From Mytilus californianus (lineage: Eukaryota), in NCBI RefSeq assembly GCF_021869535.1, contig NW_026262604.1:3596001-3660000 (forward strand): a stretch of DNA of 64,000 nucleotides, written 5' to 3'. A model generated the notes under the pieces. That model worked only from the letters and a program-made list of their open reading frames with translations, had not been told where the DNA came from and did not search any database. Numbering within the stretch: the first letter of the stretch is position 1; each line of letters begins with the position of its first letter. The translations under genes and the position numbers were made by a program. Positions 23,073 to 50,942 of the stretch are shown piece after piece.

Positions 23073-23837
23073 CTACTTATCATCTTTAATTTTAGTGGCA
23101 AGCAAACTTTCAAATTTTTCAGTTGCTATCTGTATTTTCCGGATGTTTTCCTCCAATCGCATAAGTGATTCTTGTTTCTGCTGAATATCATCATTCAGCC
23201 TTTCGTTTATCCTAAGCAAATTTTCTATTGTTTTAAGTAAAGATTCATCAAAAATTTGGACTACCATTTTACTGTATTCCTTACCAAATGATTTTTCAAA
23301 ACTTTCCTGCAATTTAGACTTTGATATCTGATCGAGACACGCTTTGTATGTATCAAGTGCAAGACATTTACGAAATAACGATGCAAGAAACCTACCCCTA
23401 TCAAGCAAAACAAAAGGAAAAATCAGCACACCAAAGACAATTACAAATATTACTGCCAACAGGAAAAGATTACCCTTAAACTCATCTATAGTTGTCATAT
23501 TATAATTTATGGAAGCGCCTCTTGTATTTATTCCTGTCATCTCAAATTCAATTTCCCGCAGTTCTACATCTAGATCTCGAGAAAGTGATCTGATTTTTTC
23601 AGCTGCATCCTCGATAATTAATTTGACTTTCTGACCTTCGCACCACCGCTTTATTCCACATCTAAACCGAGAGTGCACTTCATCTGGAATTTCCTTAAAC
23701 TGGACTTCACTTATTTTCATTGCACCAGGAGCATTTAAAATTTCTTCTCGTCCTTTACTAGAGTGAAGGTAATTATTCAGCATAGTTGTCAGTTTGTCAA
23801 TGATATAGGGCTTGTATCTTTCCAATTCTAATTTCGC
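23073..23837 (-). CDS. Gene A terminal exon 9 (AKLELERYK...KIKDDK*): stalk plus hydrophobic segment
   Basis: ttgcag|GCG, 765 nt ending in TAG; corresponds to track ORF 23073..23897. Confidence 0.9.
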   Translation of the reverse strand, partial: AKLELERYKPYIIDKLTTMLNNYLHSSKGREEILNAPGAMKISEVQFKEIPDEVHSRFRCGIKRWCEGQKVKLIIEDAAEKIRSLSRDLDVELREIEFEMTGINTRGASINYNMTTIDEFKGNLFLLAVIFVIVFGVLIFPFVLLDRGRFLASLFRKCLALDTYKACLDQISKSKLQESFEKSFGKEYSKMVVQIFDESLLKTIENLLRINERLNDDIQQKQESLMRLEENIRKIQIATEKFESLLATKIKDDK

Positions 23838-26800
23838 CTGCAACAGTAAAGATACACATGATAAATAGAAGATGAGCCTTTTCTGTCGCATTATCAAATG
23901 TGTAATACCGATTTGTGTGCGTCGACAGTTGTTTCATCAGAAAAGTATGACACAAATTAATACAAAATGCTAAACATGATGAACCAAAAAAAACCATAAT
24001 GAACAATATATATAACAACTTAAACCGTCAAAAGCTTAATAAAAATGAAATATTTGATCTTCAGCATTTACTTTCTTTTTAAATATGGGATTTCATGCAA
24101 ATAATTATTATTCAAATATAAATTAAAACAATTTCGATATCTGATAAGATTTAAGTAAGAATTTTATTCGCTTATTGTTTATTTTTCTTCATATTCTACC
24201 AGAATTAAACATTTACACGTGGAATACGTGTATCCGTTAATATTTACGTTTTCTTTACCTTTAAGTTAATCAATATTAATAATAGAAAAAGTACACCCAA
24301 AGGTTACTCATTTTAGAACTGTTTATTTTTCTTATTTTGTCATTCATTTACCAGAAAGCAGTTCACTTTCAAATCTGTAATCCTGACATGGTTCTGTCTG
24401 ACAGTTCTTTTCCGTTCGTTTTCTGACTTTCCCAAAAGTCTACACCTTACCAGTGTACCTCTCCATGCATTTTGTATGAAATTGTTCAAAAACCTACGAA
24501 TAAAAGTGGTTCTTTTATCTGTTATAATTTATGTATTTTAAAAGGCATCTTTTATACACGTAAATATTATATACAATTATATATTTCATTCATCATCATT
24601 TATAAAGTCTTATTACGAAACCTCTTCAACATAGGAAGTCAAATAAAGCCAAAGCTGAAAGTTAGGTATATCTAAACCACAAATAAGACAAAATATATAA
24701 AATGTCTATTTGTCTAAAACAAAAGGTCGTATTGAGGTTCATTTAAACACAATTTATAGACAATGTCGCACTTTTTTTGGTATCTTGTATTAAGAAAAAT
24801 AATTTTGTAAAATGAGTGATTTGTTATTAAGCTTGTTTATGATAAAACAAATTAATGGAATCTATGTAAGCAAACCTGTAGTAGTATTCCACTCTTTTAT
24901 TTTTATTCTTGTCAATCGTTTCTTTTAACATGGTTACAAATCTGTTGTATTCATGTGAAAAATTAACGGCTTTTTCGGCGCCTTTATCGATACTTTCTTC
25001 GGCACATTTTCCCACTTCTTTTTTATCGCCATTTTTAGCGTCTTTTTCTTTTATAATCTGAAAAGGGTTAAAATTAAGGAATATTTGAATAAATGTTATC
25101 ATGTGATGCCGTTTTTAAAGAATGACATCCTAAAACAGAATTGTAACTTTGAATTTGCGTTCTCATGCTCTCTCTTTGTAGCACTAAGTTTGAGAATTCT
25201 AGAATATGTTTTATCAAAACGCTTTCCATAATAGTTGAATAAATGTAAACAAGATTTTTTAGATCCAGCCCGTATAAAACATGTTGAGGAGCGAGCAAAT
25301 GTTGTCTTAATTACATCCTGAAAAGTCACTCAAAATAATCATATTTCTTTTATAGAGACTTGCAATATAATGAAACAGATCTGCACAATTCATTACTTAA
25401 CAAATATTATATTTTATAGTAGGCTAAATTCTTTTTGTGAAAAAGTATTGGTAACAATTAAGCATTTTATTGTGTAGTCAATCATTTCAATGCTGTTCTT
25501 CGGTTCTAAGATAAAGGTCTCATGACCTTCAAATAAGCTCAGATTGTACCTATGTCGAGCGACGTAATAATAAACCGAATAAAAGTACTCACCTGTTTTA
25601 AGCTTATTCGAAATACATTGTTAACATCACAACAACGCCACCCTTCTTTCAATTTTTCTTGAATTTTATTCCATGTAATTGCATGTTGATCATCTTTTTT
25701 ACTTTTTTCATCGTCTTCATCGTCCGATGAATGTTCGTATTTGTCGATAGCATCCCACTGATTTGTTATAAACATGACCTCACTTGGATCAAAACAAGGC
25801 ATTTTATCTTTGTTTTCCGTTATAGTTTCCAGAATTTTTGAAAGCTGAAAGAAGACATTGAATGCATTGATAAAACAATGATCATCAATTTTTAGGGACC
25901 ATAAACTGTTTTCCTTTGTATATATGTTGTAATCATATGTTTTATGTCTTAGAAAATCACTAAATCAAACATTAATTGCCGTTCTAGTTTTCGAGAAAAT
26001 TGAATCTAATGATGAGGGAGTTTGCATTTTTGTATAATATTTGAGGAATGTTATAGACATATTCTTGAATTGATAATAATGGATTATGGTTTAATTAAGT
26101 CAAAAATACGGGGACAATAGATCCATATAAGAAATAAAAGATTATTTTCAAAGCCATGCTTGAAATAAAGAATAATGCTCAACGTTCGTTTACTTTTAAA
26201 TGCCGAAATCGTGTGGATCTTAATTTCAGTGTCATTTTTCTAATTTTGTCTACACTAAATGTTTTTGTCATGCTTTCTAAAAATAGCAATGAACATAATA
26301 TAACACCGTGCATGATTTAGAGATATATCCCAATTGTGCACAAAAAATTGCGCAATCTTGGTTACCTCAGCGCGAAAAAACTAGACGTCGCTGAGTGAGA
26401 GTTTCGACGTCGCTAATCATTTTTCCCGGTCAGGTTATCGGCGTCATTTTTCAACAGTCTGTTACTTTTTGCAAGCGTCCTTATAGTTTATAACAGGTGT
26501 TGACGACTTACAGTCGATAGTCAATGAAAGTCGTGTGTCGATTACGGTTACATAAAATTAAATATTAGAACGTATATTTTATTAGTAGAATATTTAAGAT
26601 GATGTGCATATACTGGTTTTGTGTCATGGATGGATATCCAATATCTTTTGTGTTTCTACTATTTATTGAATAAAAATTATTAAAATAATATTATGAATTA
26701 TTTATGAAGTTATTTTCCGATTTATATTAAATTAAAAATGCTTAGTTACAAATTATTATTATGTCAAATATGTTTAAATAAAAGTTGCCTTAAAGGACGA

Positions 26801-29800
26801 CAATTTGAAGATTTTTTGCAGTTAGAATATTCAGTTTACACCGATTGATAGTACGGATTTTGCGAAAAAAAATCCTCTTTTGTAAACAACTATTTCTTGC
26901 AAAGTCCTGAATTTTGTAGGACAAAATATTCAATTTCATCGTGTCTTTTCATATTCTAGCTTTATGAGATTTTTTTTCAGGTCCTTATTTTACATATCTG
27001 AAAAGTTAAGACTTGTTTTCTACATATTATACAAAAGTGACTTTATACACATAAACGGTACTGAGTGCAGACCAATCAGTTAATATACCAGTACAATGAA
27101 TTTATAATGAAGTAAAAACCTTTTCAATATATAAACTTAATATGTTTGGACTATTGAATATTTAGAGCAAAGCTGTGCTTGTGCAAGCATTGAACTCTTT
27201 CATATTATATTAAATATCTTGGATATTTTTAATCAGTTTATCAACCGTTGCCAGATCGTCAGACATTGAATAACGATTGAGTTATAAATGATAAAATTGA
27301 GAATGAAAATGGGGAACATATATATTATTTGTATGTGTATTTGTATGAAATGTTTACCCTATGTTTATGTACACCGCCGGCATTATTGGCATTTAACACA
27401 AAAACATACGAAACTGCTTGCGGTAGAAAATCCAGTAATATTTCGTCCAGCCTGTTGTATTCCCCTATTCCAGGTGTGTCTACAAATATAACGTTTCCCT
27501 ACAAATACATAATGTATAGGCATTGTACTGTTATATTTGACAACACTAATCTGTATACAGTTTTATATGTTATAACAATCAATTGAGACGAATCGCTCTC
27601 CTATATGTTTGAGTGCTGATGTAAACTGTGTTCATGCGTCCTATAGAGATAAAATAGAATTAAATAAGTTTATTCCGATAACCTTTGTGAATACAATGGT
27701 ATACAGAAAACAATAACAACAAAGTTACCCTCTGTCACAACAATGGTGAAACATGAGGTTTACATAGAAATATTTAAATATGGACCGGATTATTAAATGA
27801 AGTAGTAAAAATCTCTTTGTTATGCCTACTATACTTTGAGGTAGTTGTTCGCCTTATACATGCTGTCGCTTGCATTCATTGAAAATTTGATACTTGAAAA
27901 TGTTAAGATATATATTACGATTAATTTAAAGATTCGTGACATCATTTCAGATATAGCATAGCAATGAATGATACTTATCAAAATATTTTACTGATTGTTA
28001 TATTAATATTCAATTAATGTTTTCATGGTTTGTATAAAAATACATGCTTAATTATAGACTGCATATGTTTAAAATTGTAATATATTGTATATCATGAATA
28101 TGCACCAAGTTGTACTTTAAAATAAAAATATCTATCTAAATATCTATAGCCTCCCATTTTATTATTCAAAAAATTGATTTCAACATGGGTTCAACAGTGA
28201 TGCCAAGTCCTAAAGCTTTTTTTAAATCATATTCAAAAGCTAAAAATAAGGATGTATAAATGTATCAACATTAATATTTAAACTTGGACATAATAATTAA
28301 AAATAAAAAATGGTTGTTGTTTTCACTGATTTAACAAGAGTGTACAAATCGATCGATTGAACCAATTACAAGATAGACCAAAGGCATTAAGTGCACTCAG
28401 TCATACCTGATAAAACTGATTGGTTTGTTTCAATGATTAGATTATTATAAAACTTTTTAAATCAAATTGAATACGGTATCAAATTGTCATTAGGTTATTG
28501 AACTCAATTGTGGCAAGTATACTTCTTTGACTAATCATTGCAGTTAACTGTTTCGGGTAGACATGTATGTCAATTTGAGTAAACAGTTAAACCGAGTAGG
28601 TTATCACAATCTAGATGAAAGGATATACAAGATCGACACATTGATAAAGTTGTCGATAATGTCAAATCTCATTTCAGTTTTATTCTATTCAGATTCGAAA
28701 GTATGTATTTTGCAAACAATACATTCAGGGAAAAATTCACTCAAAATATGCAAACTATAAGATAAAAACTGTTCGTATGTTTTTATACGGGTTTTTGTAA
28801 TTTGGAATTTTTTCCCTATATTTGGATAAAGTGAATGAATTTCTCTTTAAGATATATGCAAATCAGTCACATTCAGTTTTAACAATCAGAAGTTTTAATT
28901 TGAAGACCTTAATAGAAATTTAGATTAATTCACATTGACAAACTAAACAAAATAGGTATCGTAATTACCCTATAACAAACTTTGATTTTCAGCTATTTCT
29001 ATTTTAAACTAGAAAATACTTGTTTTTATCACCATGACAATACAATTGCGATAAGTAAAGATAGCTTTGTTGAATTTATCATTACTACATACACATCTGT
29101 AGTTACGTAGCATATCAAATACCGCAACGAATACTATGTTACTGAGTTAGCTCTGGTAGCTTTGCAAACAATTTTACCTTCAAAAACGGCACAGGTAGGT
29201 ATACGTCAACATAGTTTATGGCTTCCAAATTCTTTTCACTATTTTTAATAACAGTTAATTCCTTGATAACAGATTTCAGTGTTTTAATATCTTGTATGTC
29301 TTCGTGTTTCTCCAGAAGTTTGTCTTCTGAATAACATTTTAATCCCAACTCTTTCGAATTTCGGATCCTAGTTATTGTACCAGTTGATGCTGTGTTACTT
29401 GTTACTAAAACCGTTTTCCCGATAAGCAGATTGATAAGAGTTGATTTACCTGCACTAGTTTCTCCTAAAAGAAGAAAAAACTTCATTTTATAACCCTAAA
29501 AAGAAACATAATTTTACTATGTTTAACTCTTCAAACATACGTAGTTTACGGCTACATAACATTATTTCAACGCTAAACATATTCATGTTTAAACGACACC
29601 TACATGCTTTAACTATTCAAACAATATATTTAAAGACGTTATTCATATATGTTTTGACACTATAGACAAATATTATTAACACTACACACATTCATGTTTT
29701 AACGATACCCACATTTATGTTTTAATTCTACCAACATAAATGTTTTAACTTTACATAAATTCATGTTGTAACGCTAAATTTTAATGCTGTAACGATACAA

Positions 29801-32800
29801 ACATAGTGTTTTAACGATACAAACATATAATGTTTTAACAATACAAACATACATGTGTGTTCTTATTATGACATTTATATGATATGAGTGTTTGTTGTTG
29901 TGTTTAAGCAACAAGCAATTATCAATCTTAACTCTGTAAAGAGTTTACAAGAAACATCTGATGCAGGGATTAAAACTATTTACTAGCAAATCATGTAGTT
30001 CGTTTGAAGACCTTGGCAGTCATACCACGTCTTCCTAAATCTACTTATGATTTTTTTTTAATTGTTTTGCTGATTATTTCGTAATTTGTTATCCATTTGT
30101 TTGATGTGTTTGAGGTTTTGATTTTGCCATTTGATTAGGGACTTTCCTTTTTGAATTTTCCTCGGAGTTCAGTATTTTTGTTGTGTTACGTTTTACTGTT
30201 GTTTTTTATTTCAAGTTGCAATGCGGGTCAAAAATTAAATGATCAATATATAAAAGTTATAATTGGCATATACATGTCTCTGGTTTATTAAGTATAATCC
30301 TAACATTTTTATTATGTACTTTTTCTATAAAGCAATGTATGACGTTTTCCATTATGTTAAAAAGATATTTGCATATACCATCTGGTTGATCTGTTATATA
30401 TTTACGATTACTTTTTTTACATTTGAGATATAGTTTAAATACATGATTGTGTCCAAAACTTATCTTATAGACACTATGGATTGTTTTACGTGGACGTGTG
30501 CAACATGATTATAGAACATAATGAAATATCGTAGAGACAATTGTTGCAAGATATGGTGCAAATTTGTCCCCATGTTTTCAGAGAGAATTACGATCACCAC
30601 GACGACTTACGCCGATTAAAGACAATAGTTTAAAACAACATACAGTCAAAGGTGACAAGTCTAGTTTAAAAAAAAGGCGAAAAAAACACAAGTGTTGCTG
30701 ACAAACCTGTCACCAAGATTCCACAATCGTTTCTTATCAAATCACGTTTTGCAGCTTCGAAAACAGACATGAAGTTTGGACAGGCTGCAGTTAATTCATC
30801 TCGTAGGTTTTTATCATAATCGAGTGAAGTCAGTATCTCTTTCACGGATTCAAATATAACGTGTAAACTTTTAACTTGTTCATCTGGAGACATTTTAGTT
30901 GTCGGTCCTCTGAAAAATATCATAACTTTGACATTTTATTTTGTCATAATTGTCTAGAGGAAAGTATATGTTTCTTATTATTTTTCATATTGCTTACTTA
31001 TTTTGCAAGATTTTGATATAATAGCAAACACTGTATTCATGGATCAATGACCAACAACTGAGTAAAGTTTTTATGTGATAACCAAATCAACAGATAAAAG
31101 GCAATGAGTATTACGTTAGAGAAAAAGGCAAGCCACTTTATTAATTGGTTGTTAAAAATATATTTACTTTTGCGAAAGTGGTGTATCTGTATAGTCTTCT
31201 TTGCCATCTTTTCTTTCTGCAATTGTACAGCAAAAATCACAACTCCTTGATTCGTAAAAGTAAAGTATAAGTATCAATCCTGTTTAAAAAACTACTGAAT
31301 AAATGTAAGTATATTTAGAGTGGATAAAGAACTGTCAATTACATTTTGTTGGTGTTTACCCACATTTATCTCTATTCAAATATTTCATATCTATCCCTCT
31401 AGTTTGTTTTTGATTTTCATCTTTTTGGTGTAGGTTTTTCACCGATTTTAATGAGAAAACTAATTCTATCAAATTCCTCATGATGAGATTTAGGCAACAG
31501 TTATTTACCAATTTGCAGAGACAGATCAAGTGACAAACAAAACCAGTGGGAATCGAATTAACCCCCCCCCCTAAAAAAGAAACATGGCTTGTCGACATGG
31601 TAAGTGTCTCCTGCTATGCACGCACTTCCAACCATGAGAAAAAAATTAACAAACGCGACAAGGAAACAATCGGTAAAATTATACATTAGTTTAATATCCA
31701 TTTTTTTAATATCTTTGTTTCCAGTAACTCAGCCTATGGACTCTTACAGTTTTAAGAAATTTATTCCTCCTCCCAAACATCAATATTGAAAAAAATTACC
31801 AGCGTATTGATTATTGATAATTTGTATAGCATTCAAGATTTTTATTTCAGTTCGACAACCACATGTCAAGATAAGATTCATTTTACATCTTACTGATGAA
31901 GGATATTAGTTATCCGAAATATCTAAAATTTGTTCATGATTTAATTATTTTTTGGTGATGTTGAACCCTTTTAGACTTGTTATATATTATATTTTGTAGT
32001 ATACTGTATCATAATTTTATGATCTATCGCCCCGTAAGATTTATCGTTGGCTATTATTCAGTCATTTAACATTTTTTAATATCTATATATCTGAGACGGC
32101 AAAATCATGTCAGTCAACCCAATTGATAATTTCAAAATTGAAATAACCTCGTTTGTCATAAATTCTGGTACTGAGATGACTGCTTAAGAATGTGTCAAAT
32201 TCGAGGTACAAGTCTAAAAAATCGTATGGGTTCCGTGGAACCCTATGTCTCGCCTTCTTTTGCTGTTAATAAGATATTTGAAATTTATAAAAAAAAGTTA
32301 TGTTTCTAAAAAATGAATACAGTATGCAATGAAATCTATAGATTTATATAAGAGTGGAAACATAAATTTATTGAATGAACAAATGATAAAGAAAATAATT
32401 TTTACATTGCTTGAAGATTTATCCCTTCATTAATCAATTAAAATGCATGTAATAAGAAGATGCAATTATAAAATTTTGCTCAAAATAATTGATGCAACTA
32501 AAGTTGCAGGCTCAACAAAAATGTGGACAAAATTATTAAAAATTTTCCTCTAGATACTATCTTTTGATTGTAAGAAGCTTCTGTCCAAATTTGGTAGAAA
32601 TTCAGAATGGTTTATGAATCTAATAAATGTTTTAAAAACTTTAACTGCAGACTGTATTTAATGTATGTAATGTTAATTGGAAGAAAAACTAAGTCCATTT
32701 ATATATGGAAAAACAGGAAATAAATTTTTACCACAGAGTAATTGTTATCTTAACTGGCGGAACAACTAAGTCCATTTATCAGTAAAATAAGGATAAATAA

Positions 32801-35789
32801 GGATTTTGTTTTAACAAAATGAACTTCTGGATACTATATTATGATCTTAACCCATTTCTCTGACGTCAGTCTATTGTTCTTACTGTAGATTATTTTTCAA
32901 GAATCCACTGACCACAGTATTAACTTAAGAGAACTTTTATTATAACTTTAAACTTTTAACTTACGATCTTTTATCCTCTCAAAAACGAGTGGCATGTGTA
33001 GGATTCAAACCCGTTCGCATTTTCTTCATGATCAATAGAGTCTTCAGTCTATGCATGATACCACAAGACCACGATGGCTGACATCAATCATTATATGAAT
33101 AGTACTCTTAAAGCGTTTAATTGTCAATACATGTCATTTAACTGTATTTCTGTCTCATTGATAATTCGCTTTTGTAATCTAATGAACTATATATATCTTG
33201 GTTTGTTTAAGTTTATTGAATTTGTTTTATTTTGGGTGGTTTTTTTTTAAGAAATGGATTAAAACTACTTCTTTGACAGTAAAAACAGAAACAAAATCAT
33301 CGCAATTATATCAAAATGAAATATATAATACTTCTACATATTCTACGATTAAAACAATATTTGGGTCCAGAAAAAAATTACAATGAAAAAATTTCATCCC
33401 GGATACAAGGGTCGAACTTTGCACTGTTAATATCACCGTTATGACATTCGTTACCAACGACTAGACGATCACGGCTATGAACAGCTTGTTGGTAAGTTTA
33501 TGAAATCAACATAATTATTCATTGTACATCCGTAGCAAGAGCAATTCTGATGGGGATTCAGAATGCGTACCACAGATAAAACTAGTTTATTGACCGGTGA
33601 ACGATATATGCTAAATGGAATAACGTTAAAATAATCTTAACTTAATGAAACGGAAACAGTTTAAACAAAATTTAAATATAATTGTTCAATTTAAATGGTA
33701 AGCACATAATTTTAATACATTAGGAAAGCAACATGAATTTGAGCATTATGAAATGGCAGATTTATGGCATCAACGCTAATAATATTTATTTGACTAAGAA
33801 CGGCTTAACGTTGTTTGGCTTCAATATACCAAATCATGTTGCTAAATATTATATAAATAAATGTTGAAGGTTCTAAATTTTGGTAATTAAAATTTGTTAA
33901 CTTTTCAAAACAAGATAAATAAATTCTGTATATTAATATACACGATATATGTCTTTTTGAATAAATTAAATATACCAAAATCCATTCAATTTAAATAATT
34001 TGTAATAATTAAACATTAAATGAAATATGTATATACAAAAATAAAATCTGGTGTTAAAAAGGGGAGCTAACATCCCATTAAAGTTATCTTAAACTTATGT
34101 CAACTTGTCAAATGTCTAAATATAGATGCGAACCGTGTGGATATAATCATTTCCAGCTATTATAGAATAAAAAAGACAAAATACGAAACTATTTTTTATG
34201 AATTATCGTTGATTCATTATCAAAACGTAAAAAAGATAGTCGTTTTACTAAAAATGGGTAACGCTAGAGAATTGATAAGAAGAAGTGGATTCGGAAATGA
34301 TAATCAACTTGCGACTAAAGTCGCTCGTTGATTATCGGTTACGAATCCACTACGTCTTATCAATTCTCTACAACATAAACAAGCTTATTTCCAAGAATGT
34401 TAGAAATCCAGGATATTTTAAGAAAGTTATTAAAATTTAAAAAAACTTGAACCACAGAGTGAATGTAATGTTAACTAGCAGAAAAAATATGTCCATTTAT
34501 AAGTACAATACAGATAAACAGGATTTATTTTTACAAAATTTACTTCTGGATACTATCTTATGATCATAAACAAGCTTCTGTATACAGAGTGAATATTTGT
34601 GGACGCCGACGACAGAATGTAGGATCGCTATGTCTCGCTTTTGCGACAAAAGTCGCAGGCTCGACAAAAATGAGGCAGAGGAAGTCGTGTCTGTGTTTTT
34701 TTAATTTCTAGTTCTGACGGATACATTGATGGAACCCAATCAGAAAAGTTTGATTTGTTAAAGGAAAGATCATCATCAATATACCTGTTGTATCAAATCT
34801 AGAAAATATCTTTTTTCTTGGGAAATGATATCACGATCTCAATTGGTCATACAAACTGGAATTACTATTTCTACCTATACAATATTATATTAGTGTTATA
34901 AATTTTCCGTATGCTTTAATTGACATATATGAAAAATAGAAAATAAACTGGACAAAAGATAAAAAGGTTACAATCAAGTCCACAAGTTGAAAAATACATG
35001 ACGATACCATTGCAACAACAACCAAAAAACGGCAATAGGAAAAACAAACATTGAGCAACGCAATGATGGCGTAGTCTAATGTGATCCGGGAGGATAAATA
35101 GATCCTTTTCAACGAGTAGCATCCGTTGTATTGAACGCTAGTAAACGAAGTAAATATTTGGTAATGTGAACTATTTTCCGATAGGTCACATTCGGTGATA
35201 CATTTATCAAGAAAACCTAATGCTTAATGATGTACGCGCTGCAATGCATTTTTTTAATATGCAAAGAAAAATGTCTTTCAGCAATTAAATACAGAAATAC
35301 GTGGAAAACAGCAATTCCCGTAATTTGGTTTTACGCTTAAATTGTTTTAAAATATTCTTTATCAGCTTTACTTAGATTAACAGTTTTTCAAATGCAGATG
35401 TGTAAAGTTTTGACTAAGGGTATATTCGAGTTGCTGGTAATGAATGCATAGCAGGAGGCGTTTACCATGTCGCTTCACCCGTTACAAGTGTTCTGAACTT
35501 TTTCTGTATAGCATAATTGGGATCCAACCAATCATATCAATAATGGAATGTATCTCTCTACAGAGTACCTATGCTTCCTTGACCGGGTTTTGCAATACTT
35601 TTAGGCCCCTTTCGGTCATATCAGATTTTTTATTTAGAATTATGATATATATTTTCAAATACTACTGCCTTCAGGATCGCTGAAGAGACATAAGTTGTCG
35701 AAATAAGTATTGGTGCTGTAAAGTGGTTAATAATCTCATGACAAAATATATAAATCCTTACCTGAATCGAACTGCTTCGATGACGACAT
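23073..35789 (-). CDS. Gene A: dynamin-like GTPase (BDLP/mitofusin-like, Dynamin_N type), 9 coding exons, 682 aa
   Basis: Manual model, complement(join(23073..23837,24352..24493,24876..25057,25593..25844,27358..27498,29178..29464,30707..30909,31168..31216,35762..35789)). Total 2049 nt, open frame, all introns GT-AG, phases 1,2,1,0,0,0,2,0. Motifs GETSAGKS, TGTIT, DTPG, TNQWD; C-terminal helical region with a hydrophobic stretch. The model is mirrored exon-for-exon by paralog B. Confidence 0.88.
24352..24493 (-). CDS. Gene A exon 8 (FLNNFIQNAWRGTL...KVNCFL)
   Basis: tcgtag| to |gtaaat, 142 nt; homologous to B exon 8. Confidence 0.87.
24876..25057 (-). CDS. Gene A exon 7 (IIKEKDAK...KRVEYYYR)
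   Basis: tttcag| to AG|gtttgc, 182 nt; the 3' part is homologous to B exon 7. Confidence 0.8.
25593..25844 (-). CDS. Gene A exon 6, G4 (LSKILET...TNQWD...RISLKQ)
   Basis: tttcag| to CAG|gtgagt, 252 nt. Confidence 0.9.
27358..27498 (-). CDS. Gene A exon 5, G3 (GNVIFVDTPGIGE...AGGVHKHR)
   Basis: ttgtag| to |gtaaac, 141 nt, DTPG motif. Absent from the ORF track because it has no start codon. Confidence 0.92.
29178..29464 (-). CDS. Gene A exon 4, P-loop (GETSAGKSTLINLLIG...VDVYLPVPFLK)
   Basis: ttttag| to |gtaaaa, 287 nt; contains the G1 and G2 motifs. Confidence 0.92.
29565..29855 (+). repeat. Degenerate ~21-bp minisatellite (ATGTTTTAACGATACAAACAT-like), gene A intron 3
   Basis: atgttttaac/aacgatac motifs recur many times. 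Confidence 0.6.
30707..30909 (-). CDS. Gene A exon 3 (GPTTKMSPDEQ...RNDCGILVTG)
   Basis: tttcag| to |gtttgt, 203 nt; homologous to B exon 3. Ends in the first base of the P-loop Gly codon. Confidence 0.88.
31168..31216 (-). CDS. Gene A exon 2 (ERKDGKEDYTDTPLSQK)
   Basis: Acceptor ttgcag|, donor |gtaaat, 49 nt. Same length as B exon 2, with a conserved ~30-nt acceptor context. Confidence 0.8.
32228..34670 (-). mobile_element. Same HINE-like family, split by a ~1.5-kb insertion, in gene A intron 1
   Basis: Palindrome GGGTTCC-GT-GGAACCC at 32228. The repeat unit breaks at ~32851 and resumes at ~34375; the GCGACAAAAGTCGC end is at 34643-34670. Confidence 0.65.
35762..35789 (-). CDS. Gene A coding exon 1 (MSSSKQFDS)
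   Basis: ATG at 35789, donor G|GTAAGG, 28 nt, phase 1. Matches B exon 1 (MAASKQCDS) in length and sequence. Confidence 0.75.
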
Positions 35790-39849: not shown

Positions 39850-40022
39850 TTCCAGTCTGCAGGAAAAAAATGTCACCCTACCCTGATACATTATTCTGAC
39901 TCCAAGGTAACTAGTTTTTTTTGTAACTCCCTTATGCTGCATGCTTAGTGGAGAAGTAGCAAATACCAAATTTCGAGTTTTCTTTAAGACAAACACTCTA
40001 CCGCGAGACCATCTAGCCGGTA
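39850..40022 (-). mobile_element. Decayed tRNA-SINE of a second family
   Basis: The minus strand has a degenerate tRNA-like head and a body ggtatttgctacttctccactaagcatgcagcataaggag. A similar SINE-type head lies at 965-1025. Confidence 0.5.
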
Positions 40023-40807: not shown

Positions 40808-41548
40808 CTAATTGTTTTTTTCAAAATCTTTAGTTGCTTCCTGGATTTTTGAGATTTTATCCCCCAATCGCACAAATGATTCTTGTTTCTGCTTTATGTC
40901 CTTGTGTGTGTCAAGAAGCCTTTCGTTGGTAGCAATCAGGCTGTTTAATACATTAGGCAAAGATTTATCAAAAATACTTATTATCACCTTACTATATTCT
41001 GCACCAACTGATTTTTCGAAACTTTCCTCTAAGACAGACGTTGATATCTGTGACAGGCAGCTATCATAGATCATATCTGCGGTTTTACGATAAAGATCCG
41101 AACCAAAAATCAAATAGCCGCCCCAAAATAAGGGAACAGATATCAAAGCAAATGCAACCGAAATGACTATTGCTAAAGGTAAAAGCAGAAGCCCCAAAAA
41201 AATAATACTACTGTTAGGACTGTATTGTACGCTTGGATCTGGCCCGGTCATAACTAACTCTATTTCCTGCAGTTTTGATAATATATCTTCGACATGTGTT
41301 CTAATTTTTGTGTCTGCATCATCAATGATTTGTTTTACTTCCTGTCCTTTGCACCATCGCTGTATTCCACTTTTAAGTCTGGCTGGAACTTCTCCACTTA
41401 GACTTATGTATGAGACTTCACATATTCCTTTCGTATCAGGAGGATTAAGGATGTGCTCTCGTCCCTCTGGCGAATGAAGGTATAAATGCAGCTTCTCTGT
41501 TAGCTCTGTAATTATTGTCTTTTTGTACTCTTCCAATTCTTTGCTTGA
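40808..41548 (-). CDS. Gene B terminal exon 9 (SSKELEEYK...KDFEKNN*)
   Basis: ttgtag|TCA, 741 nt to the stop; corresponds to track ORF 40808..41536. Confidence 0.9.
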   Translation of the reverse strand, partial: SSKELEEYKKTIITELTEKLHLYLHSPEGREHILNPPDTKGICEVSYISLSGEVPARLKSGIQRWCKGQEVKQIIDDADTKIRTHVEDILSKLQEIELVMTGPDPSVQYSPNSSIIFLGLLLLPLAIVISVAFALISVPLFWGGYLIFGSDLYRKTADMIYDSCLSQISTSVLEESFEKSVGAEYSKVIISIFDKSLPNVLNSLIATNERLLDTHKDIKQKQESFVRLGDKISKIQEATKDFEKNN

Positions 41549-44500
41549 CTACAAAAGTTAAGGAATATGAAAATTAATAGCAATTTGTGTAGTCGCAAAA
41601 CCTTTTGCGCACTTCGAATAAAAAAGTCAAAATATTTTAGTTGACACATGCTCCTTTGAAAAGCTTTAATCAGATGAGCGAAAAACAACTTTAAAAAGTA
41701 ATCCGTGAGGAGGCTAAATATATAGTGGTATTCTAGGGAACAGATAAAATCGTCTTTATTCGAAGCCTAAGATTACCTGGATTACCTAAACTTTATGTTT
41801 TATGTATTTCATGAGATGAATAAGTCAATTTGTTTGTTAGAAGCAGCTTTTCGTGTTTATTAAGTAAATCATCGATAAAACTAACCCGAGATTAAAACAG
41901 TCATAATGAATATTTCCAGTCATAACTGTAAACTTGTACTTCGCTTTAAACAAAAATTAGCCAACGTTCATACAATAGTTCAAGACGTTACATACAAAGG
42001 TTATTTTTCATTAAAATCAGTGCCATTTCAATGACTGAAAATGTGAAAGCTGTTTAAAATTAAATATGATAAGGGCCTTATGCATTTTTAAACACCGTCG
42101 GTAGGTTTTGCTGCACTTGAAGAAAACGTGAAATGTTATGCATATTCAATAGGAATAAAAAAGGGAAATAATTAGAATAAAAGGGTTATTCATATGAGAT
42201 CCTTTTTCGAAATCTAAAAACGTTTTGCTTTTTATGTACGATGGAGATTGGAATTCTTTAACTACATATCGGTCTACAGATATATTCTCTGTGATATAAC
42301 GGTAAACGTAAAACTCATGAGAGCTGATATTACTTTAATACATATAGTAATCTTAGACGAGAGGAACAAACTAAAGATAACGCAGAATAATGTCCTCGTG
42401 TATCAAATATAAAGAGAACGATTTCTCATTTAGTATGAAACTGTAACTAATAACTTGTTTAGACCATCGCACTTCAGCGAGACCATCGCACTTCAACGTC
42501 CCCATCGCACCTTCCAGAAAGAACATATAATAATTTAATACATATCTCTCACAAAATGGTCAAAATGCCTAGTTGTGTTACTATTAGAATACACACTGTT
42601 TGTAAAATATTTGGATAATCATGGTACGAAAAAAAGTTAAAATAGCAAAAATTAACCGAGGAAAACTCAAAACGGAAAGTCCTTTTATCAAATGGGAAAA
42701 TCAAAAGCTCAAACGAATGGTACAGTCATTTCCTCAGGTAGAAAATGGTGGATTACAAAGTGAAATCTTAAAGACTTAATTCACTGTAAAATCTTTGTTG
42801 AAAGTTTATTTTGAATAGTAAAAAAGGTCATATGAAATTGAACTAGATTACCTTAGTTTACCTATGTCTGAGATCAGAAGTACCTGTATTTGGACTTCCG
42901 GGAACAAATTCTCTCGTATGTGCAATTATAGGTATGTTGACTTTTTCATTATAAGTCGGGCGTAGGTAATGATTTAATATGACATAATTTTCACTTTATT
43001 CAAACTTAAGACAGAATGGCAATGAACATGTAAAATTGTTGAATCTTACACCGAAAGCAGTGGAGAGATAAATAAGTGGTTTGAAACATGTTAACGTGCA
43101 CATTTTCTTTTTTGTTAGATTGAAATTTTTCCGAACTTTTTTCCTATTTTGTTATAGATTTACCTCCTGGCATTTGGTTTGCAAGTCATGAATCTTTGAA
43201 ATGTTTTGATTTATGAAGCCTTGTTGTTCTTCTTCTGTCCTCTTTAACATTTTCAGTCGTGTAAGTGTACCTCTCTCTGCATTTCGTATGAAATCTTTCA
43301 AAAATCTATAAAAAGTTATGATAATAGATCATTTTACCTTTTCTTCTGTCTGATATTTGACATTTATTCAACAAGGCAATTGTCATACACATATTCAAAT
43401 ACAAACGTCTAAAAAGTAAAATCACATAAATACTGAACTCCGAGGAAAATTCAAAATAGGAAAATCCCTAATCAAATGGCAAAATCAAAAGCTCAAACAC
43501 ATCAAACGAATGGAAAGCAACTGGCATAGTCCTGACCTGGAATAGGCATTTTCGTATATTGAAAATGGTAGATTAAACCTTGTTTTAAAGTTAATTCAAC
43601 CTCTTACTTGTATGACAGTCTTTTTTACGTATTTCTGTACTTTGTTTTAATAACATTATACATGTTATAGAGAACATGAGAATTAACACAGTTTTGTCAT
43701 TTAAAAAATACAAAACGAGATACAAACTAACCTGTAATAGAATTCCACTCTTTTATTGTCATTCTTTTCAATAGTTTCCGTTAAAACGGTTTCGAATCTC
43801 TTATATTCAGCAGTAAAACAGTTATTGATCCCTTTCCGAACCTCAAAAAGTAAATCAGAGATAAATTTACATAACGTAGAATATGACATTGAAAACTTTC
43901 TCAAATTGCACACTCATACTCATTTTATTAAGCTTCTTATTATAAAATAATTTATTCTATAAAGGTATAGGTGAAGATGTGCGATCCTGGTTCAATAAAA
44001 TGTTTTCGGTGAGTTTGTGTGTGTGTTTCTTTTTAATCTGTTTTATGTTTCCTGTATATTACATAAACCATCATCAAAATGCTGATCTTTTTTTATCGGT
44101 AGCATATTTGTCGTGTTTTGTGGATTGCCAATTAATACGTTCACACTATACAGCCTTAATATATGTATGGCTCTCTAAACACACGTCAGCTCTCAACAAC
44201 TACAGCAACAATTTTGCATTAGCAAACATCAGACAACAATCTGTTTCATTTGTTATTTAGAGAAAATGATATGTTATTGAAGACACAAACCTGAATAAAA
44301 TTCAATCTCTATATTTTAATAGAAAATGATATTTTTTATAGATAGCATAGATGTTTGCTCGCTGTCCACATTTACCTACTGACCAACAGTCCAGTGAAGA
44401 AGAAAAAAAACTAGGTCTTGTGACAGCAGATGATCGTACCTAGAGCAATTGCACATTGACTGAACAAAAAAGTACTTGCCTGCGTTAAGCTTACACGAAA

Positions 44501-47500
44501 TACTTTCTCAACATCAAACGAACACCAGGCATTTTCAAATTTTCTTTGAATAAGCTTCCATGTCTGTGCATGTTGATCCTTTTTTTTGCTTTTGCCATCC
44601 TCGTCTTCGTCTGATGATGAATCGTCATTTTGGATACAATCCCACTGATTTGTAAGAATCATGACCTCTCGTGGATCAAAACAAGGCATTTCTTCTCGAT
44701 TCTCCATAATGGTTTTCAAAATTTTTAAGAGCTGAAAGAAAATAGTAAATAGCATGCGTATTGGTTATATTTCATGTATTCAATATAAGTAGTTTCATTT
44801 GCTAAATACAGGCAACAGTAGTATACCGCTGTTCGAATGTCAAAAATCGATTGAGAGAAAACAAATCCGGGTTACAAACTAAAACCGAGTGAAACACGTC
44901 AACTATAAGAGGAAAACAACCAAACAACAGAAACACTTAAGTGCAACAAAAAATCAAACGACACAAAAAGGAACTATAAGATAAAAACTACCATTTTCCT
45001 GACTTGGTACAGGACATTTTAAGAAAAAATGGTGGGTTGAACCTGGTTTTGTGGCTAGCCAAACCTCGCGCTTTAATGGCAATGTTAAATATAACACTAA
45101 AAGGGCAACATTACATGACAGGACCACAGTACAAATAAATGCAAGAACATTCAGGACAGAGAAATACACAAATAAACAATACAATAATACATTTCGACAT
45201 GCTAATCAAGCTTTATGATCTTGTGAACTATTCCAGTGTTTATAATCTGCTCATTTAAATTGAAGATAAAATATAATTGTATAAGGCTAAAAAGGACAAT
45301 TTTAAACGTATAAGGTATTTTGAATTCAAATATGTTAGACTATAAGTGCGTAGAAAAACAAATAAATTAAATAAAACAAATTGATGGTTAGTTCTTGCTC
45401 CCTACTTGTTCCCCATTATAAATTTGTGATGTATTTACGTTCAATCAACTTTATGTTTACCGAATAGATTAAGTTTCATAAATATAATGGCCATGCATAC
45501 TATTTGCGTCGTATTTTTCTCAATTAATACTGCACAGCGAATTTTATCTAAAATATTAAGCTTCATTTGCTTTCATATAAATAACATTAATTTCGTATTA
45601 ATCGAATGAAAAAACATGACTACTAGATGTATAGAATCAATAAAAAACATGCCTGACAATAGTGTGACAGAATTAACATGGGACAGAGGAAAAGAATGAC
45701 TGACGAAACACGAGTACACTTTCCTAGAAAAACGAAGGATTCGGTTATCCTCTGTGTGCCGTTTTGAGTCATTTTGCCCATTAAACCTCCAAGTATTAAC
45801 ACATTCTTTGCATTCGTGTTTTCGATTTGATCTTTCCTGATTGAATTAATCCAGAAAATTTATCGGACGCACCTAATCTAATAATTTTCATTTTCAATTT
45901 TTATAGTATAATACAATGGATACATTTGAAATTCTTACCCTATCTTCGTGGATTCCACCTGTATCTTTTGCATTTACTACAAACACAAATGAGACAGCAT
46001 GCGGCAAAAATTCAAGTAAAATGTTGTCCAGATTGTCATTCTCTCCTATTCCAGGTGTATCTACTATTATGACATTTCCCTAAAAATGTAAAATACATAT
46101 GCATTTTGCTGTTTTGTAATTCCGGTTAGACTTCAAATGAAATTTGTTCAAAGTTCAAAACTATTTTACAATCACGCGTCGATTTAATTTGAACTCATTT
46201 ATGTGTTAAAATTCTCACGATCAGGTTCTTTTATAGCCAAACATACTACATCTATCGTATTGTCTCGGAATGAGGTGTTCCTATTGTTGAAGGCCGTATG
46301 GTTGCCTTTAAATGTTACATCGACTTCATTTGAAATCTGGTGATATTTTTCAAATGTTTATACTGAACTGTGTATATGTAAATAAGTTCCTGTAGCATGC
46401 AGAGGTATGCTATTAACTAATAGAAAAACAGTCAAACATACCATTGATGTTAGTAATAAATGATATATACAAAATATGACCATTTATTGATGTATGCTGT
46501 TTTTATTTTGATTGGAAGGCTGTTATAATATGTATACTTACCCCATTTACTACCTCACAGATTAATGTTAACATTGAGACCTAATGGGTTACTTTTTTAT
46601 GAAATTGACCGCCAGAATTCATATGTATCACATTTAAACATGCATCATGGAAAAAGAAATAATTTTTAGGACTTTTTATACTATATAGAATTCAAACGGT
46701 CTAAACTTTGTTATAAAAATGCGTTAGTTCACACTTGATAACTATGACTATTTAATGATGTATGCTGTGGTTAACACTTGATAACTTACTTTACATTTCC
46801 GGCAAAGTTATTATCAATAGGAAATTCAATCCGTATTTAATGCAAAGATACCTGGTTGATTTTAATCAGTAAATGGTTTTTTCGCTTTACCTGTTTCCGA
46901 TTGACTTGAATACACTCATTACAAATTTACTATAATCTGTTGCATGTCGATTTTGAAAGAAGGTGAATATGTTTGGAAGAACATATACTATGATAATATT
47001 AATGAAGATTATCTAAACAATGCAAAAGCAAAACTAATGAGGAGAAATTTTCCTGTTAACATTTGATTCCTCGATATATTCTAAATGCTATAAATAGAAA
47101 TGAAACAACACTGTATAAATGGCGTATAAGAACCAAAACAGTTGAATAGCTATATGACCACAATACCAGAAAGTAATAGCTAAATCCATTTAAGGTAAAT
47201 TTTGGCTAGTCTGGGGGTTGGGATGTTAAACCTTATTGTTATTCTTAATTTCTTAATTTTCATATACGGACAACCAAAGAAAGGTTAAAATGGTTACATG
47301 CATGTATGCATGTAAAAAGTGTGATTTATGGTTTTTATAGTACACAGTTCTTTGTCTTCATCAGTTGCTTTTTAAAGTATATTAGTCTACTTAAAAATAA
47401 TATGAAAAAAGTGGTGTAATTATAATTGAGGAAAAAACACTGCTGATTTTTCTCCATATTAAATCAAAGTGAATATGACATAATTTGAATAATAAATAAT

Positions 47501-50500
47501 CTATGGGGCTATTTTTACAAACTAGTCATTTAAACTCCATTTTGCAAGCCATATTAGCACAATTGGTACTATTGATATGATTTGCATGATTTGTTTTTAA
47601 ATGAATAAATTGTACATCAGTGCGATATTGTATAATGACTTTCGCAAATGAGTAGAACCAGTTTTTTTATCAATGGAGATAGTTCTGTAGAAAATGTGAT
47701 GAATTCATAATTGATTTTTTTTTTTGGTTCGTAAAATATTTCAAATCATCATGATGACAAAAACTATGTTAGTGGGATAACCCTGACAGAATTCCAATCA
47801 TTTTGCTTATAACATTTTACCTTCAAAATAGGCACTGGTAAGTACACATCCACAAAGTATTTGTCCTGTCCGTCCTGTGATGCTATTTGAATCTCAGTTA
47901 GTTTTTCGATGATAGATCTTAGTTTCTTTATATCGTCCACTTCTTTCTCTTCCTTCAGAGTTTCTTCTTTTGTAAAACATTTTATTTTTATTGTTTCTGA
48001 ATCCCTTATCCTGGTTATTTTGCCAGTTGTTGCTAAATTGCCTGTTACGAAAACTTTCTTTCCGATAAGTTGATTTATGAGAGTTGTCTTACCAGCACTT
48101 GTTTCTCCTAAAAATAAGAAAAGCTTTATGTTCCATGCATACATAAATTGTTTCAATAATGCAAACCAATAAAAGTTATATGATATGATCGTCGAATGTT
48201 TTCTTCCCAAAATGGAATTATCAATTAACATGTGTTGACCAAAATTTTACATGTAATATCAGTTCCAGGGGTTTCAACTAGTTATAAGTCAAAATCAGAT
48301 ATAGGTTTGTAAGACAAAATAAATCGGTTGTTTTAAATTTCAATTCATCTATATTAATATGATTGTGTTTCTGCATACAAAACACATTCAAGGAAAATAA
48401 AACATGTCATAAATGGTTCGTTAGAAACATTGATGTAAAACTGATTCTCCTGTTCTGGTTTCTTTTTTATTGTTGGTTCATGAGTTCATATTTTATATGT
48501 GTGATATAAAATAAGTTCTCATGAATTTTTTAACTATTCGGTTAATTTGTTAGAAATAAGAGCATGCGTAGTTTAGTAAAAGATTAGTTCCAAACCGACG
48601 TTGACGTTCAGTAAAATTTTTATGCAAATTTGTACTGGCAGACTTTGGATGTAACATTGCCAACAAAAGAAAAATAATAGAGGCTTAATTTGGCACCATG
48701 GTTAGAGGAGTTACCTGTATAATAAGGGAGATCAGAAACCTCAGTACAAGTACATGTATTGTTTATTGTTTGCAGAAAACCAAACGTGTTGCTAACAAAC
48801 CTGCAACGACGATTCCACAATCATTTCTCAGTAAATCACGTTTTGCTGATTGGAAAACAGTCATGTAGTTTGGACAGGCTATCGATAATTCATCTTGTAA
48901 ATCTTTATCATAGTCTGGAGATTCAAGCATTTCTTCCACTGATTCAAACATTACTCTCAATTTTTCAATTTGTTCATCTGGAGACGATTTTTTGGTCGAA
49001 CACCTAACATATAGGTTATCAATTTGTTGCTGACTGTCGAGAGGAAAGATACATACAACAATTATTTATTTTAACTTCAATTATAGTGGTTATTCTAATA
49101 ACTCTGAACGATTAATGAAGGGGGTATTGGTTTGATATTTTAATTGAATATATTCTTTTATTTTGCATTCGCAAAAACTTAAATATAATATGAAATTTGT
49201 TGTTTCTGGAAAACAATTTCAAATGGCATTAGTGCATCTTAAGAGAACTAAAAACTAATAACCTTTATTTATTATTGATCTTAAAATTAAAAAAAAATCA
49301 TTTACTTTGTTGGAATCCGTGGATCTGTATAGTTTTCTTTTAACTCTTTTGTATCTGCAATTGTACAGCAAACATCACAACTCGAATTCGTAAACAATTA
49401 TATTGTGTGGTATATTAAATATAATCCCTATAATTGAATACATCATTATTTGTCATTTGACATTGTGTAGTTTGTTTTACCCTCGTGTATACTTCTCTCC
49501 CAATTCAATACTCGATTAGTGAAGTCTTCACCTATTATTTATACGTTTACCCTTTTTTTTTTTTTTAAAGATATCGATATTAGAAGATGTGGTATGAGTG
49601 GCAATGAGACATCTCTCCATTCAAGTCACAACTTGTAAAAGTAAACCGTTATAGATCAAAGTACGGTCTCAGCAATGAGCCTTGGCTCACACCAAACAGC
49701 AAGATATATATAGGGCCCCAAAAATGACTGGTGTAAAACCATTCAAACGGGAAAACCAACGGTCTAATCTTTTTGCCTGTTTTACAAGATTCCTTAGTTT
49801 AGAATAAACATCTCTGGCTGATGTACTTATTTTTTATTCTTTACTGTTATTTCTAAATGAAAAGCTGTTTTCTCCGATTAGATTTTCACAAAATGTTTTT
49901 TTTGTTTTATTATTAACGTGTAAATCTTTGTTTTCGTCGAATTGTATGGTATACGAGGCAAAGGCACAATCTGCATGTTTTGTCCATGTTTTTATCAAAT
50001 TTTAAAGCCTTTCTTTTATTAATGGTTTACTTGTCCTTTGTAAAGTACTACTGTTTAAAACCTAAAAATTATTATGTTTCTACAAAATGGTACAATGATG
50101 GTCCATGAAATGAAATGCATGTGTTACTGCACTTTATAAGACATATTGATTGTATGAATGTTTTCTAGCATTTGCATTACTAACCAGTAAAAGGGCATGC
50201 ATTTATCATGATTGTTCACTTTTGCGCTTTTGATTATTGTATTTGATAAATGACTTTCTGTTATGAACTTTCCATGAAATCGTTATTTTTGTATATATTT
50301 TTTTTTTTGCATTTTAATATGATGATATTCAACATAATCAATAGAAGAAACAGATCAATTGATTTTAATACAATCAAAATACTGTGTTCTGTAGCAGATG
50401 CAATACTTGTTTATTTAGAATACTTTTATCTCTAAAATGCAGCTTGTCTTTTGCTTATTTTCTTTTTTGTTTTTATGACAATATTTAGAAAGTTTTTTTT

Positions 50501-50942
50501 ATTTCATTACTTAGACAGGCAAATTTTTCTCACGTGAATGTCATATGAAATTCAGATGAAACTCACCTCGAATAACCTCATACATGAAAGGCACGTGCAA
50601 TTTTTTCCATTTCAACTTTAACACCCCCCCCCCCCCCAAAAAAAATTGTAGTCTTCATGATTTAATTTTCATTTGAAAATTTAGATGTTATATAAATAAT
50701 TTGTTTGTTTTTTTTTAAATTCATGTGTTTGCCACGTGAAAACAGTTCATGTGCTTTTCATTAGAAATTCAAACAAATTTCACATCTGAGATTCACCTAA
50801 AACTCACGTCAAATCAGTTCACGTGAGTTTCACGTATAAACTCGTTTAAATTGATAGAAATTTCCCTTTCTAGATCATGTCATAATGTCAAATTAAATAA
50901 ATCGTTTTCTTTACCAGAATCGCATTGCTTCGATGCAGCCAT
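40808..50942 (-). CDS. Gene B: paralogous dynamin-like GTPase (BDLP/mitofusin-like), 9 coding exons, 650 aa
   Basis: Manual model, complement(join(40808..41548,43164..43305,43732..43841,44480..44731,45939..46079,47821..48107,48801..49003,49306..49354,50915..50942)). Total 1953 nt, open frame, same intron phases as gene A. Motifs GETSAGKT, DTPG, TNQWD. Intron 6 needs a GC donor and a GAG acceptor. 50/96 identical residues to A in the P-loop exon (hand count). Confidence 0.85.
43164..43305 (-). CDS. Gene B exon 8 (FLKDFIRNAERGTL...QTKCQE)
   Basis: ttatag| to |gtaaat, 142 nt. Confidence 0.87.
43732..43841 (-). CDS. Gene B exon 7 (VRKGINNCFTAEYKRF...KRVEFYYR)
   Basis: Donor AG|gttagt is clear. 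The only phase-compatible acceptor after the in-frame upstream stop is ctttttgag|GTT, giving 110 nt; the 5' boundary is less certain. Confidence 0.7.
44480..44731 (-). CDS. Gene B exon 6, G4 (LLKILKT...TNQWD...RVSLTQ)
   Basis: tttcag| to CAG|gcaagt (GC donor), 252 nt, same length as A exon 6. Confidence 0.88.
45939..46079 (-). CDS. Gene B exon 5, G3 (GNVIIVDTPGIGE...GGIHEDR)
   Basis: ttttag| to |gtaaga, 141 nt. Confidence 0.92.
47821..48107 (-). CDS. Gene B exon 4, P-loop (GETSAGKTTLINQLIG...VDVYLPVPILK)
   Basis: ttttag| to |gtaaaa, 287 nt. Confidence 0.92.
48801..49003 (-). CDS. Gene B exon 3 (CSTKKSSPDEQ...RNDCGIVVAG)
   Basis: gttag| to |gtttgt, 203 nt. Confidence 0.88.
49306..49354 (-). 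CDS. Gene B exon 2 (DTKELKENYTDPRIPTK)
   Basis: ttgcag| to |gtaaat, 49 nt. Confidence 0.8.
49582..49770 (-). repeat. Partial copy of the same abundant interspersed repeat, in gene B intron 1
   Basis: Reverse complement of 56600-56785. Confidence 0.75.
50915..50942 (-). CDS. Gene B coding exon 1 (MAASKQCDS)
   Basis: ATG at 50942, donor G|GTAAAG, 28 nt, phase 1. Confidence 0.75.

Follow-up and report, generated by a model that had tools for sequence, protein, structure and literature searches.

Two tandem genes in Mytilus californianus probably encode BDLP/mitofusin-class GTPases of an uncharacterised bivalve family

The window analysed here, a stretch of 64,000 nucleotides from the mussel Mytilus californianus, contains two neighbouring genes in the same orientation, designated A and B, both of which are predicted to encode large GTPases. 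According to our splice model, gene A occupies positions 23073..35789 on the minus strand and is composed of nine coding exons (35789-35762, 31216-31168, 30909-30707, 29464-29178, 27498-27358, 25844-25593, 25057-24876, 24493-24352 and 23837-23073, the last including the stop codon at 23075-23073) with lengths of 28/49/203/287/141/252/182/142/765 nucleotides. All of its introns are of the GT-AG type, and the translation yields a protein of 682 amino acids without internal stops. Gene B, also on the minus strand at 40808..50942, starts with an ATG at 50942 and likewise has nine coding exons in the splice model (50942-50915, 49354-49306, 49003-48801, 48107-47821, 46079-45939, 44731-44480, 43841-43732, 43305-43164 and 41548-40808, again including the stop), which are 28/49/203/287/141/252/110/142/741 nucleotides long and encode 650 amino acids. 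The limits proposed for two complete, open nine-exon genes in a first-pass annotation of this DNA were thus recovered to the exact coordinate, and as far as the sequence models go both genes appear complete. The relationship between the two that had been described was also reproduced: the phase is the same at every intron, seven of the nine exons are equal in length, and 49 of the 95 amino acids (52%) encoded by the P-loop exon are identical. Over the entire proteins the identity is 50%, and no similarity is detectable between the introns of A and B.

The one irregular splice site resides in gene B, where the donor following exon 6 at position 44480 is a non-canonical GC (CAG|GCAAGT); all remaining introns of this gene conform to GT-AG. 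Only the junction formed with the GC donor restores the Q-V-x-K-G residues which are conserved in the family (P0045, P0054, P0046 and P0059). A canonical GT-AG alternative, with the donor after 44476 and the acceptor before 43831, also remains in frame, but was ranked second because the conserved V-x-K-G is lost. A different acceptor for exon 7 at 43895, which would result in a protein of 668 amino acids, was rejected, as the 110-nt exon fits both the length and the residues of the family. A cryptic GT donor is located further inside exon 6, after the DEDED run, and corresponds to the donor used in RefSeq, where the sole model of gene B is truncated and frame-shifted. Exon 4 of gene B is 100% identical to RefSeq model P0066. 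The protein databases that were searched hold no entry for gene A, and a word search based on the last exon alone recovered only ORF fragments, owing to its length filter. Both genes had been described as hidden, and this description is borne out by the annotation, which misses A and truncates B, probably as a result of the GC-AG intron. Copy numbers of the family that are counted from annotation are therefore underestimates.

Both proteins display the order of elements that had been read from the sequence, a GTPase domain, then a helical stalk, and a hydrophobic segment late in the sequence. The P-loop exons, exon 4 in each gene, match Dynamin_N (PF00350) with 46.3 and 50.3 bits at a cut-off of 27. 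In gene A this exon (29178..29464, minus strand; E 6e-12) carries the G1 motif GETSAGKS at residue 94 together with the switch I region, and in gene B (47821..48107, minus strand; E 3.7e-13) it carries G1 in the form GETSAGKT. The G3 motif DTPG is encoded by exon 5 (27358..27498 in A and 45939..46079 in B, both minus strand), and the G4 motif NQWD by exon 6 (25593..25844 in A and 44480..44731 in B, both minus strand), where it is followed by an acidic loop, rich in Ser, Asp and Glu in A. G1, G3 and G4 are intact in both proteins and start at the same residues, 94, 196 and 264, in both models. A Kyte-Doolittle scan located the hydrophobic segment of A at 23403..23471 on the minus strand (residues 551-573, about 23 amino acids); that of B, at 41105..41209 on the minus strand (residues 518-552, about 35 amino acids), contains prolines and may form a membrane hairpin or paddle. 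In a profile alignment this segment lines up with the paddle region of BDLP, and a hydrophobic hairpin is retained in most of the family members scanned. Pfam searches identified no Dynamin_M, GED or GBP domain, and a kinase domain is absent from both A and B.

One or both genes might instead be relics without expression, or pseudogenes that died only recently and are still open by chance. This explanation would be favoured by the GC donor of B, its truncated RefSeq model, the missing database entry for A and the RNA data on B. RNA-seq run X1, for which tissue and condition are unknown and of which about 6% was read, showed zero depth over exons 5-9 of B, and the coverage between positions 40750 and 46749 of the window was confined to intronic repeats, so that the proposed confirmation of the B model by RNA-seq was not obtained from this run. 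Searching sequencing runs with the A region 23073-29500 returned no RNA run among the matches listed. With the last exon of B, small runs of two related species were found to hold about 0.4 of its words; however, their label as RNA is a guess, and they were therefore not counted as evidence of expression. Two paralogues are present on spliced, transcript-length contigs, namely P0046 (contig L002, 2.8 kb) and P0044, a near-identical counterpart of a family copy at 29.92 Mb of contig C24. Expression of A and B looks low or conditional.

The coding sequences themselves argue against decay. Both are open over approximately 2 kb, which at 31% GC would occur by chance with a probability of about 1e-24. 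An orthologous contig of a related mussel (L001) retains exons 6-9 of gene A together with their splice sites, with 88-94% identity in the exons compared to 65-82% in the introns and an omega of 0.45 (Fisher p 1.7e-4). For exons 8-9 of gene B, the orthologous contigs L004 and L003 gave omega values of 0.08 and 0.13, respectively, with exons being 96-97% and the intron 77-80% identical. All splice sites of the tested exons are conserved, and indels within exons occur in multiples of three only. Furthermore, the last exon of B was found in four other DNA samples of M. californianus and, in diverged form, in related species. Both genes are under purifying selection, with omega well under 1 (0.45 for A and about 0.1 for B), and we regard it as quite improbable that either of them is a pseudogene.

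The class of the proteins had been proposed from the order of GTPase domain, stalk and membrane segment, which is that of BDLP and the Fzo/mitofusin proteins. Since a search of PDB sequences with single exons (BDLP at E 0.007) was too weak for classification, a family profile was needed. Among PDB entries this profile matched best to the BDLP of Nostoc punctiforme (2j68/2j69/2w6d) with an E-value of 8.3e-18, in a collinear alignment of nearly full length (profile positions 62-619 with BDLP residues 66-683), followed by mitofusins 1 and 2 at about 2e-9 and then by a Campylobacter DLP and IniA. The motifs G1 (GxxxxGKS), G3 (DxPG) and G4 (N-x-W-D) of BDLP line up with those of the mussel proteins, the family consensus NkWD being aligned with NAWD in BDLP and with NRWD in Mfn1, and the hydrophobic paddle is found at the equivalent position. 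As a structural proxy for A and B we used an AF2 model of the homologue P0045 (pLDDT 81, pTM 0.72), which shares 64% identity with B and 52% with A. With this model BDLP was again the best match of all, both in Foldseek (2j69, 1.7e-14) and in VIA-align (Z 17.7 over 544 residues), ahead of Mfn1/2 (Z 15-16.6), which, like Fzo1, resemble it in the G domain and the fold of the first helical bundle, whereas Mx and dynamin chains (Z 10-12) rank below BDLP, mitofusin and IniA. The full-length fold of BDLP and mitofusin, consisting of a G domain and of neck and trunk bundles built from N- and C-terminal helices that fold back, is present in the P0045 model. Taken together, profile and predicted structure support the assignment of A and B to the BDLP/mitofusin class of dynamin-like GTPases, in line with the initial proposal. 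The likeness to BDLP has its limits: only about 14% of the residues are identical, the genes of the mussel are animal genes rich in introns, the hydrophobic segment of their proteins is longer and contains prolines, and an acidic loop follows G4.

Mitofusin shares with A and B the tryptophan in G4 (NRWD compared to NQWD in the mussel), a hydrophobic region flanked by a helical half on either side and thus the general GTPase-helical-hydrophobic-helical order. Given the structural similarity to Mfn1/2, A and B might accordingly be the mussel orthologues of canonical mitofusin (Mfn/Marf/Fzo). However, the last exons of both genes did not match the C-terminal Fzo_mitofusin domain (PF04799) at E-values up to 1, and the only PF04799 locus of the genome, the true mitofusin locus, lies elsewhere, on contig C13 at 66.416-66.421 Mb. 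In addition, the profile scores BDLP far above mitofusin, and the mussel family has six copies in the genome and is confined to one lineage. Canonical mitofusin identity is hereby effectively refuted and its probability almost nil; that A and B are distinct from the housekeeping mitofusin, as already suspected, is supported by these comparisons.

The mussel proteins also resemble kinase-fused DLPs, known from molluscs and amphioxus, in which Dynamin_N is followed by a C-terminal protein kinase. The predicted structure that comes closest in the ESM Atlas belongs to this group (TM 0.73 over 571 residues), their sequence matches reach E-values of 1e-45 to 1e-75, and five of the six that were scanned possess a hydrophobic hairpin. 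Unlike them, A and B are devoid of the kinase domain, and they have a C-terminal helical arm of their own. Bacillus DynA, LeoA/BC of ETEC, Campylobacter DLP1/2, Mycobacterium IniA and SynDLP likewise fall into the bacterial-type class of DLPs and all appeared among the structural or profile matches. In contrast to DynA, the mussel proteins are devoid of a two-module fusion, and the homologues P0013, P0019, P0045 and P0046 reached only 14-32 bits with the DynA model NF052648 (cut-off 1600); their PADLOC matches to LeoA and LeoBC were weak (E 1e-8 to 3e-3) and restricted to short stretches.

Overall, we consider it likely that A and B are intact, constrained paralogues which encode BDLP/mitofusin-class GTPases of an uncharacterised bivalve family and not the canonical mitofusin. 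The predicted layout would comprise an N-terminal helix, the G domain with G1, G3 and the NQWD-type G4, and a long helical neck and trunk, followed in the C-terminal part by the proline-containing hydrophobic hairpin or paddle and a back-folding helical arm. If the proteins work as BDLP and mitofusin do, the hairpin might serve as a membrane anchor, and binding of GTP would be expected to lead to dimerisation of the G domains and a swing of the helical bundles from a closed to an open state, by which membranes could be tethered, bent or fused.

The family is larger than the pair. The family-specific C-terminal exon occurs in six copies in the M. californianus genome and the P-loop exon at no fewer than 20 loci. 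Out of 1.84 billion proteins, no more than 40 representatives match the C-terminal exon, and the named members are restricted to Mytilus, Saccostrea and Ostrea. The earlier suggestion of an expanded, uncharacterised bivalve family therefore held, and multiplication that took place independently in mussels and oysters is supported by the sequence comparisons. A literature search, which included papers on the evolution of the dynamin superfamily, found nothing on this family. The contig that harbours A and B holds a second same-strand pair of family members, about 50 kb apart (C24:29.92/29.97 Mb). The recurrence of such pairs, the position of A next to B on the same strand at 50% divergence and the occurrence of Campylobacter DLP2 among the structural matches might be taken to indicate an obligate heterotypic pair, similar to the operon-encoded bacterial DLP1/DLP2 or LeoB/C. 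However, A, B and the two genes of the second pair group within a single Mytilus-only clade of the C-terminal tree (support 96), an A-type/B-type division common to mussels and oysters is absent, the oyster copies forming clades of their own, two more members on contig C165 are each single, and G-domain dimers are to be expected for any dynamin pair. An obligate heterotypic pair thus appears improbable. The tree and the single members suggest that both pairs arose by recent tandem duplication and do not represent an ancient heterotypic pair that has been inherited together.

It might be speculated that the proteins are inducible innate-immune or membrane-damage effectors similar to Bacillus DynA or to Mx/GBP, and that both genes remain silent in the absence of a challenge. 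The lineage-specific expansion of copies in mussels and oysters, the fast evolution of A (omega 0.45 and a long branch) and the weak PADLOC matches to LeoA and LeoBC dynamins are consistent with such a role, and the lack of B reads in run X1, given its unknown tissue and condition, would fit conditional expression. On the other hand, the strong conservation of B would not be expected of a gene in an arms race, the matches to PADLOC and to the NCBIfam model of DynA are far below any cut-off, the literature search found no paper on the family, and expansion by itself is common in bivalve genomes. We therefore rate a function as inducible effectors as rather unlikely. An extended version of this idea, in which kin of the kinase-fused DLPs form a second, non-mitofusin BDLP-type lineage of animals that expanded in bivalves as conditionally expressed, membrane-anchored defence or repair effectors and counterparts of DynA, is put forward as a tentative hypothesis of similarly modest probability. 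To our knowledge, no BDLP-class GTPase of animals other than mitofusin has been studied. The existence in bivalves of a separate multi-copy family of membrane-anchored, BDLP-like proteins, to which kinase-fused cousins are related, would enlarge the known membrane-remodelling repertoire of animals. The family is also a candidate, amenable to experiment, for immunity or membrane repair specific to this lineage.

Gene A differs from its relatives in two respects: its hydrophobic segment is shorter than that of most family members, and it is placed on a long branch of the C-terminal tree. Thus, judging from its sequence, A may have diverged in function.

A six-frame comparison of the region's two halves revealed seven collinear blocks of protein similarity on the minus strand. 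Exon models were derived by reading the splice sites around each block and by adding two short upstream exons, which were located through a conserved block and through fuzzy matching to the first exon of B. In the resulting splice models, gene A spans 35789-23073 (minus strand; 9 exons of 28/49/203/287/141/252/182/142/765 nt, 682 aa) and gene B spans 50942-40808 (minus strand; 9 exons of 28/49/203/287/141/252/110/142/741 nt, 650 aa). The models agree with the first-pass annotation, which had proposed two 9-exon genes in the same orientation and with these outer limits: all intron phases are identical, seven of the nine exons are equal in length, and the identity in the P-loop exon was measured at 52%, as against the approximately 52% claimed, with 50% overall. 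No similarity was detectable between the introns of A and B. At 31% GC, the chance of an open frame of 650-680 codons is about 1e-24. All introns are of the GT-AG type except that following B exon 6, whose donor is GC (CAG|GCAAGT); this junction recovers the motif Q-V-x-K-G, which is conserved in homologues of the family. An in-frame GT-AG alternative for B exon 6 ranks second, as it is weaker and does not recover the motif.

Both genes are under constraint, as indicated by a comparison with Logan contigs from a related mussel that are collinear with the window including the introns. In exons 6-9 of A, identity to this mussel is 88-94%, compared to 65-82% in the introns; the splice sites are kept, the sole exon indel comprises 3 nt, and dS of 0.163 and dN of 0.073 yield an omega of 0.45 (Fisher p 1.7e-4). 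For B exons 8-9, two contigs gave omega values of 0.08 and 0.13, at exon identities of 96-97% versus 77-80% in the intron. Four other DNA samples of M. californianus also contain the last exon of B. A and B are thus two open, constrained paralogues at the coordinates claimed for them. In addition, the first exons together with about 70 bp upstream (35738-35858 in A, 50885-51015 in B) are 69% identical while the introns cannot be aligned, and this stretch may have been conserved as a 5' UTR or core promoter.

A family profile search identified two M. californianus RefSeq proteins on C24, the contig carrying the window. P0066, the RefSeq model of B, is a 272-aa protein named 'uncharacterized protein in xynA 3'region-like'. 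It matches B exons 3-4 at 100% identity, then splices out of exon 6 from an internal GT past the DEDED run and continues out of frame in exon 9 (junction at 44480-44627 and 41448-41549), so that B is represented in RefSeq only by a truncated and frame-shifted product. The frame conserved in B exon 9 is that of the splice model and not that of the shifted RefSeq tail. The GC donor of exon 6 is the probable cause of this truncation. Among the matches listed in word and profile searches, no protein was more than 85% identical to A, which therefore appears to be unannotated.

With regard to protein class, Pfam detects Dynamin_N in the P-loop exon and the G3 exon of both A and B; G1, G3 (DTPG) and G4 (NQWD) are intact, and a late hydrophobic segment is present, in line with the domain order initially proposed. 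No Pfam domain was found in the C-terminal exon. A 32-row family profile retrieved Nostoc BDLP from the PDB at E 8.3e-18 (profile 62-619, chain residues 66-683), followed by Mfn1/2 (about 2e-9), Campylobacter DLP2 and IniA. In the BDLP alignment, G1 is aligned, VDTPG corresponds to VDSPG and the G4 consensus NkWD (NQWD in A and B) to NAWD, and the hydrophobic region of the family falls onto the BDLP paddle. This hydrophobic insert is conserved, as a proline-containing stretch of 30-44 aa was kept in most relatives scanned; that of A is shorter, at about 23 aa. Neither A nor B carries a Pfam Fzo_mitofusin domain, which in the M. californianus genome was found only on contig C13 (66.416-66.421 Mb). 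A and B are accordingly distinct from the housekeeping mitofusin, as had been suggested.

Structural modeling was carried out, together with the family alignment, on P0045, a M. trossulus homologue 64% identical to B and 52% to A (pLDDT 81.3, pTM 0.72). Foldseek ranked BDLP first over the full length (1.7e-14), ahead of IniA, Cj-DLP2, SynDLP, Mfn1 and LeoA, and VIA-align gave Z 17.7 over 544 residues for BDLP and Z 15-16.6 over about 330 residues for Mfn1/2. The profile and, with P0045 as a proxy, the predicted fold place A and B in the BDLP/mitofusin class, as first surmised. In the model, the sequences flanking the hydrophobic segment pack together in one helical bundle, which favours a hairpin or paddle over a single membrane pass. 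By analogy to BDLP and mitofusin biology, such a hairpin would anchor the proteins in the membrane, and dimerization of the G domains might lead to GTP-dependent tethering or remodelling of membranes.

Of 1.84 billion representatives searched, only 40 matched the C-terminal exon. Named family members come from Mytilus species, Saccostrea and Ostrea and are labelled 'uncharacterized' or 'bacterial dynamin-like protein' by NCBI. The M. californianus genome holds six copies of this exon, namely the pair in the window, a second pair, also on one strand, at C24:29.92/29.97 Mb and two copies lying singly on contig C165, so that the proposed expansion of an uncharacterized bivalve family is borne out within the lineage. 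The P-loop exon occurs at at least 20 loci, some of which presumably belong to kinase-fused relatives. These more distant relatives, with a C-terminal protein kinase, are found in unionids, Dreissena and Branchiostoma, and a molluscan kinase-fused cluster is the nearest Atlas structure (TM 0.73); the next nearest relatives are bacterial dynamins (E 1e-9 or weaker). A literature search returned no paper on the family. The kinase-fused proteins P0072-P0075 and P0077 (Sinanodonta, Branchiostoma, Dreissena) share the same DLP module followed by the kinase; the hydrophobic hairpin is kept in the four Sinanodonta and Branchiostoma proteins, and none was found in Dreissena P0077.

A quick-search tree of the C-terminal domain, with branch support from SH-aLRT alone, groups A, B and the two genes of the second pair in a single Mytilus-only clade (support 96); the stem of A is long (0.78), and the oyster proteins fall into separate clades. 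As judged from these sequences, the pattern is that of a lineage-specific tandem duplication and not of an old A-type/B-type pair, which leaves the suggested A/B hetero-oligomer without support. The second pair lies on the minus strand at C24:29916963-29925736 and 29967085-29977111, 26 Mb from the window along one chromosome; RefSeq P0054 corresponds to one of its copies, and the Logan protein P0044 is nearly identical to the other.

RNA-seq did not confirm the gene models: in X1, a run from the same species of which about 6% was read, depth was zero over B exons 5-9, the only stretches covered being intronic repeats, and none of the indexed RNA runs contained A. Spliced mRNAs do exist for the family, as transcript-length contigs encode the full-length paralogues P0046 (2.8 kb) and P0044, the latter being a near match to the copy at C24:29.92 Mb. 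An interspersed repeat is common to the introns of both genes (43350-43549 in B intron 7; 30088-30159 in A intron 3, inverted). Its X1 depth of 20-30x, from partly fitting reads of 95-99% identity, indicates that the genome contains transcribed copies of it, and another repeat (44750-45149) behaves in the same way. The only matches in the window at the Rfam gathering score are two divergent tRNA genes at 9259-9330 (plus strand) and 9666-9736 (minus strand); at 55845-56966, all hammerhead families stayed below that score. A run of 159 N at 3925-4083 marks an assembly gap or masked sequence.
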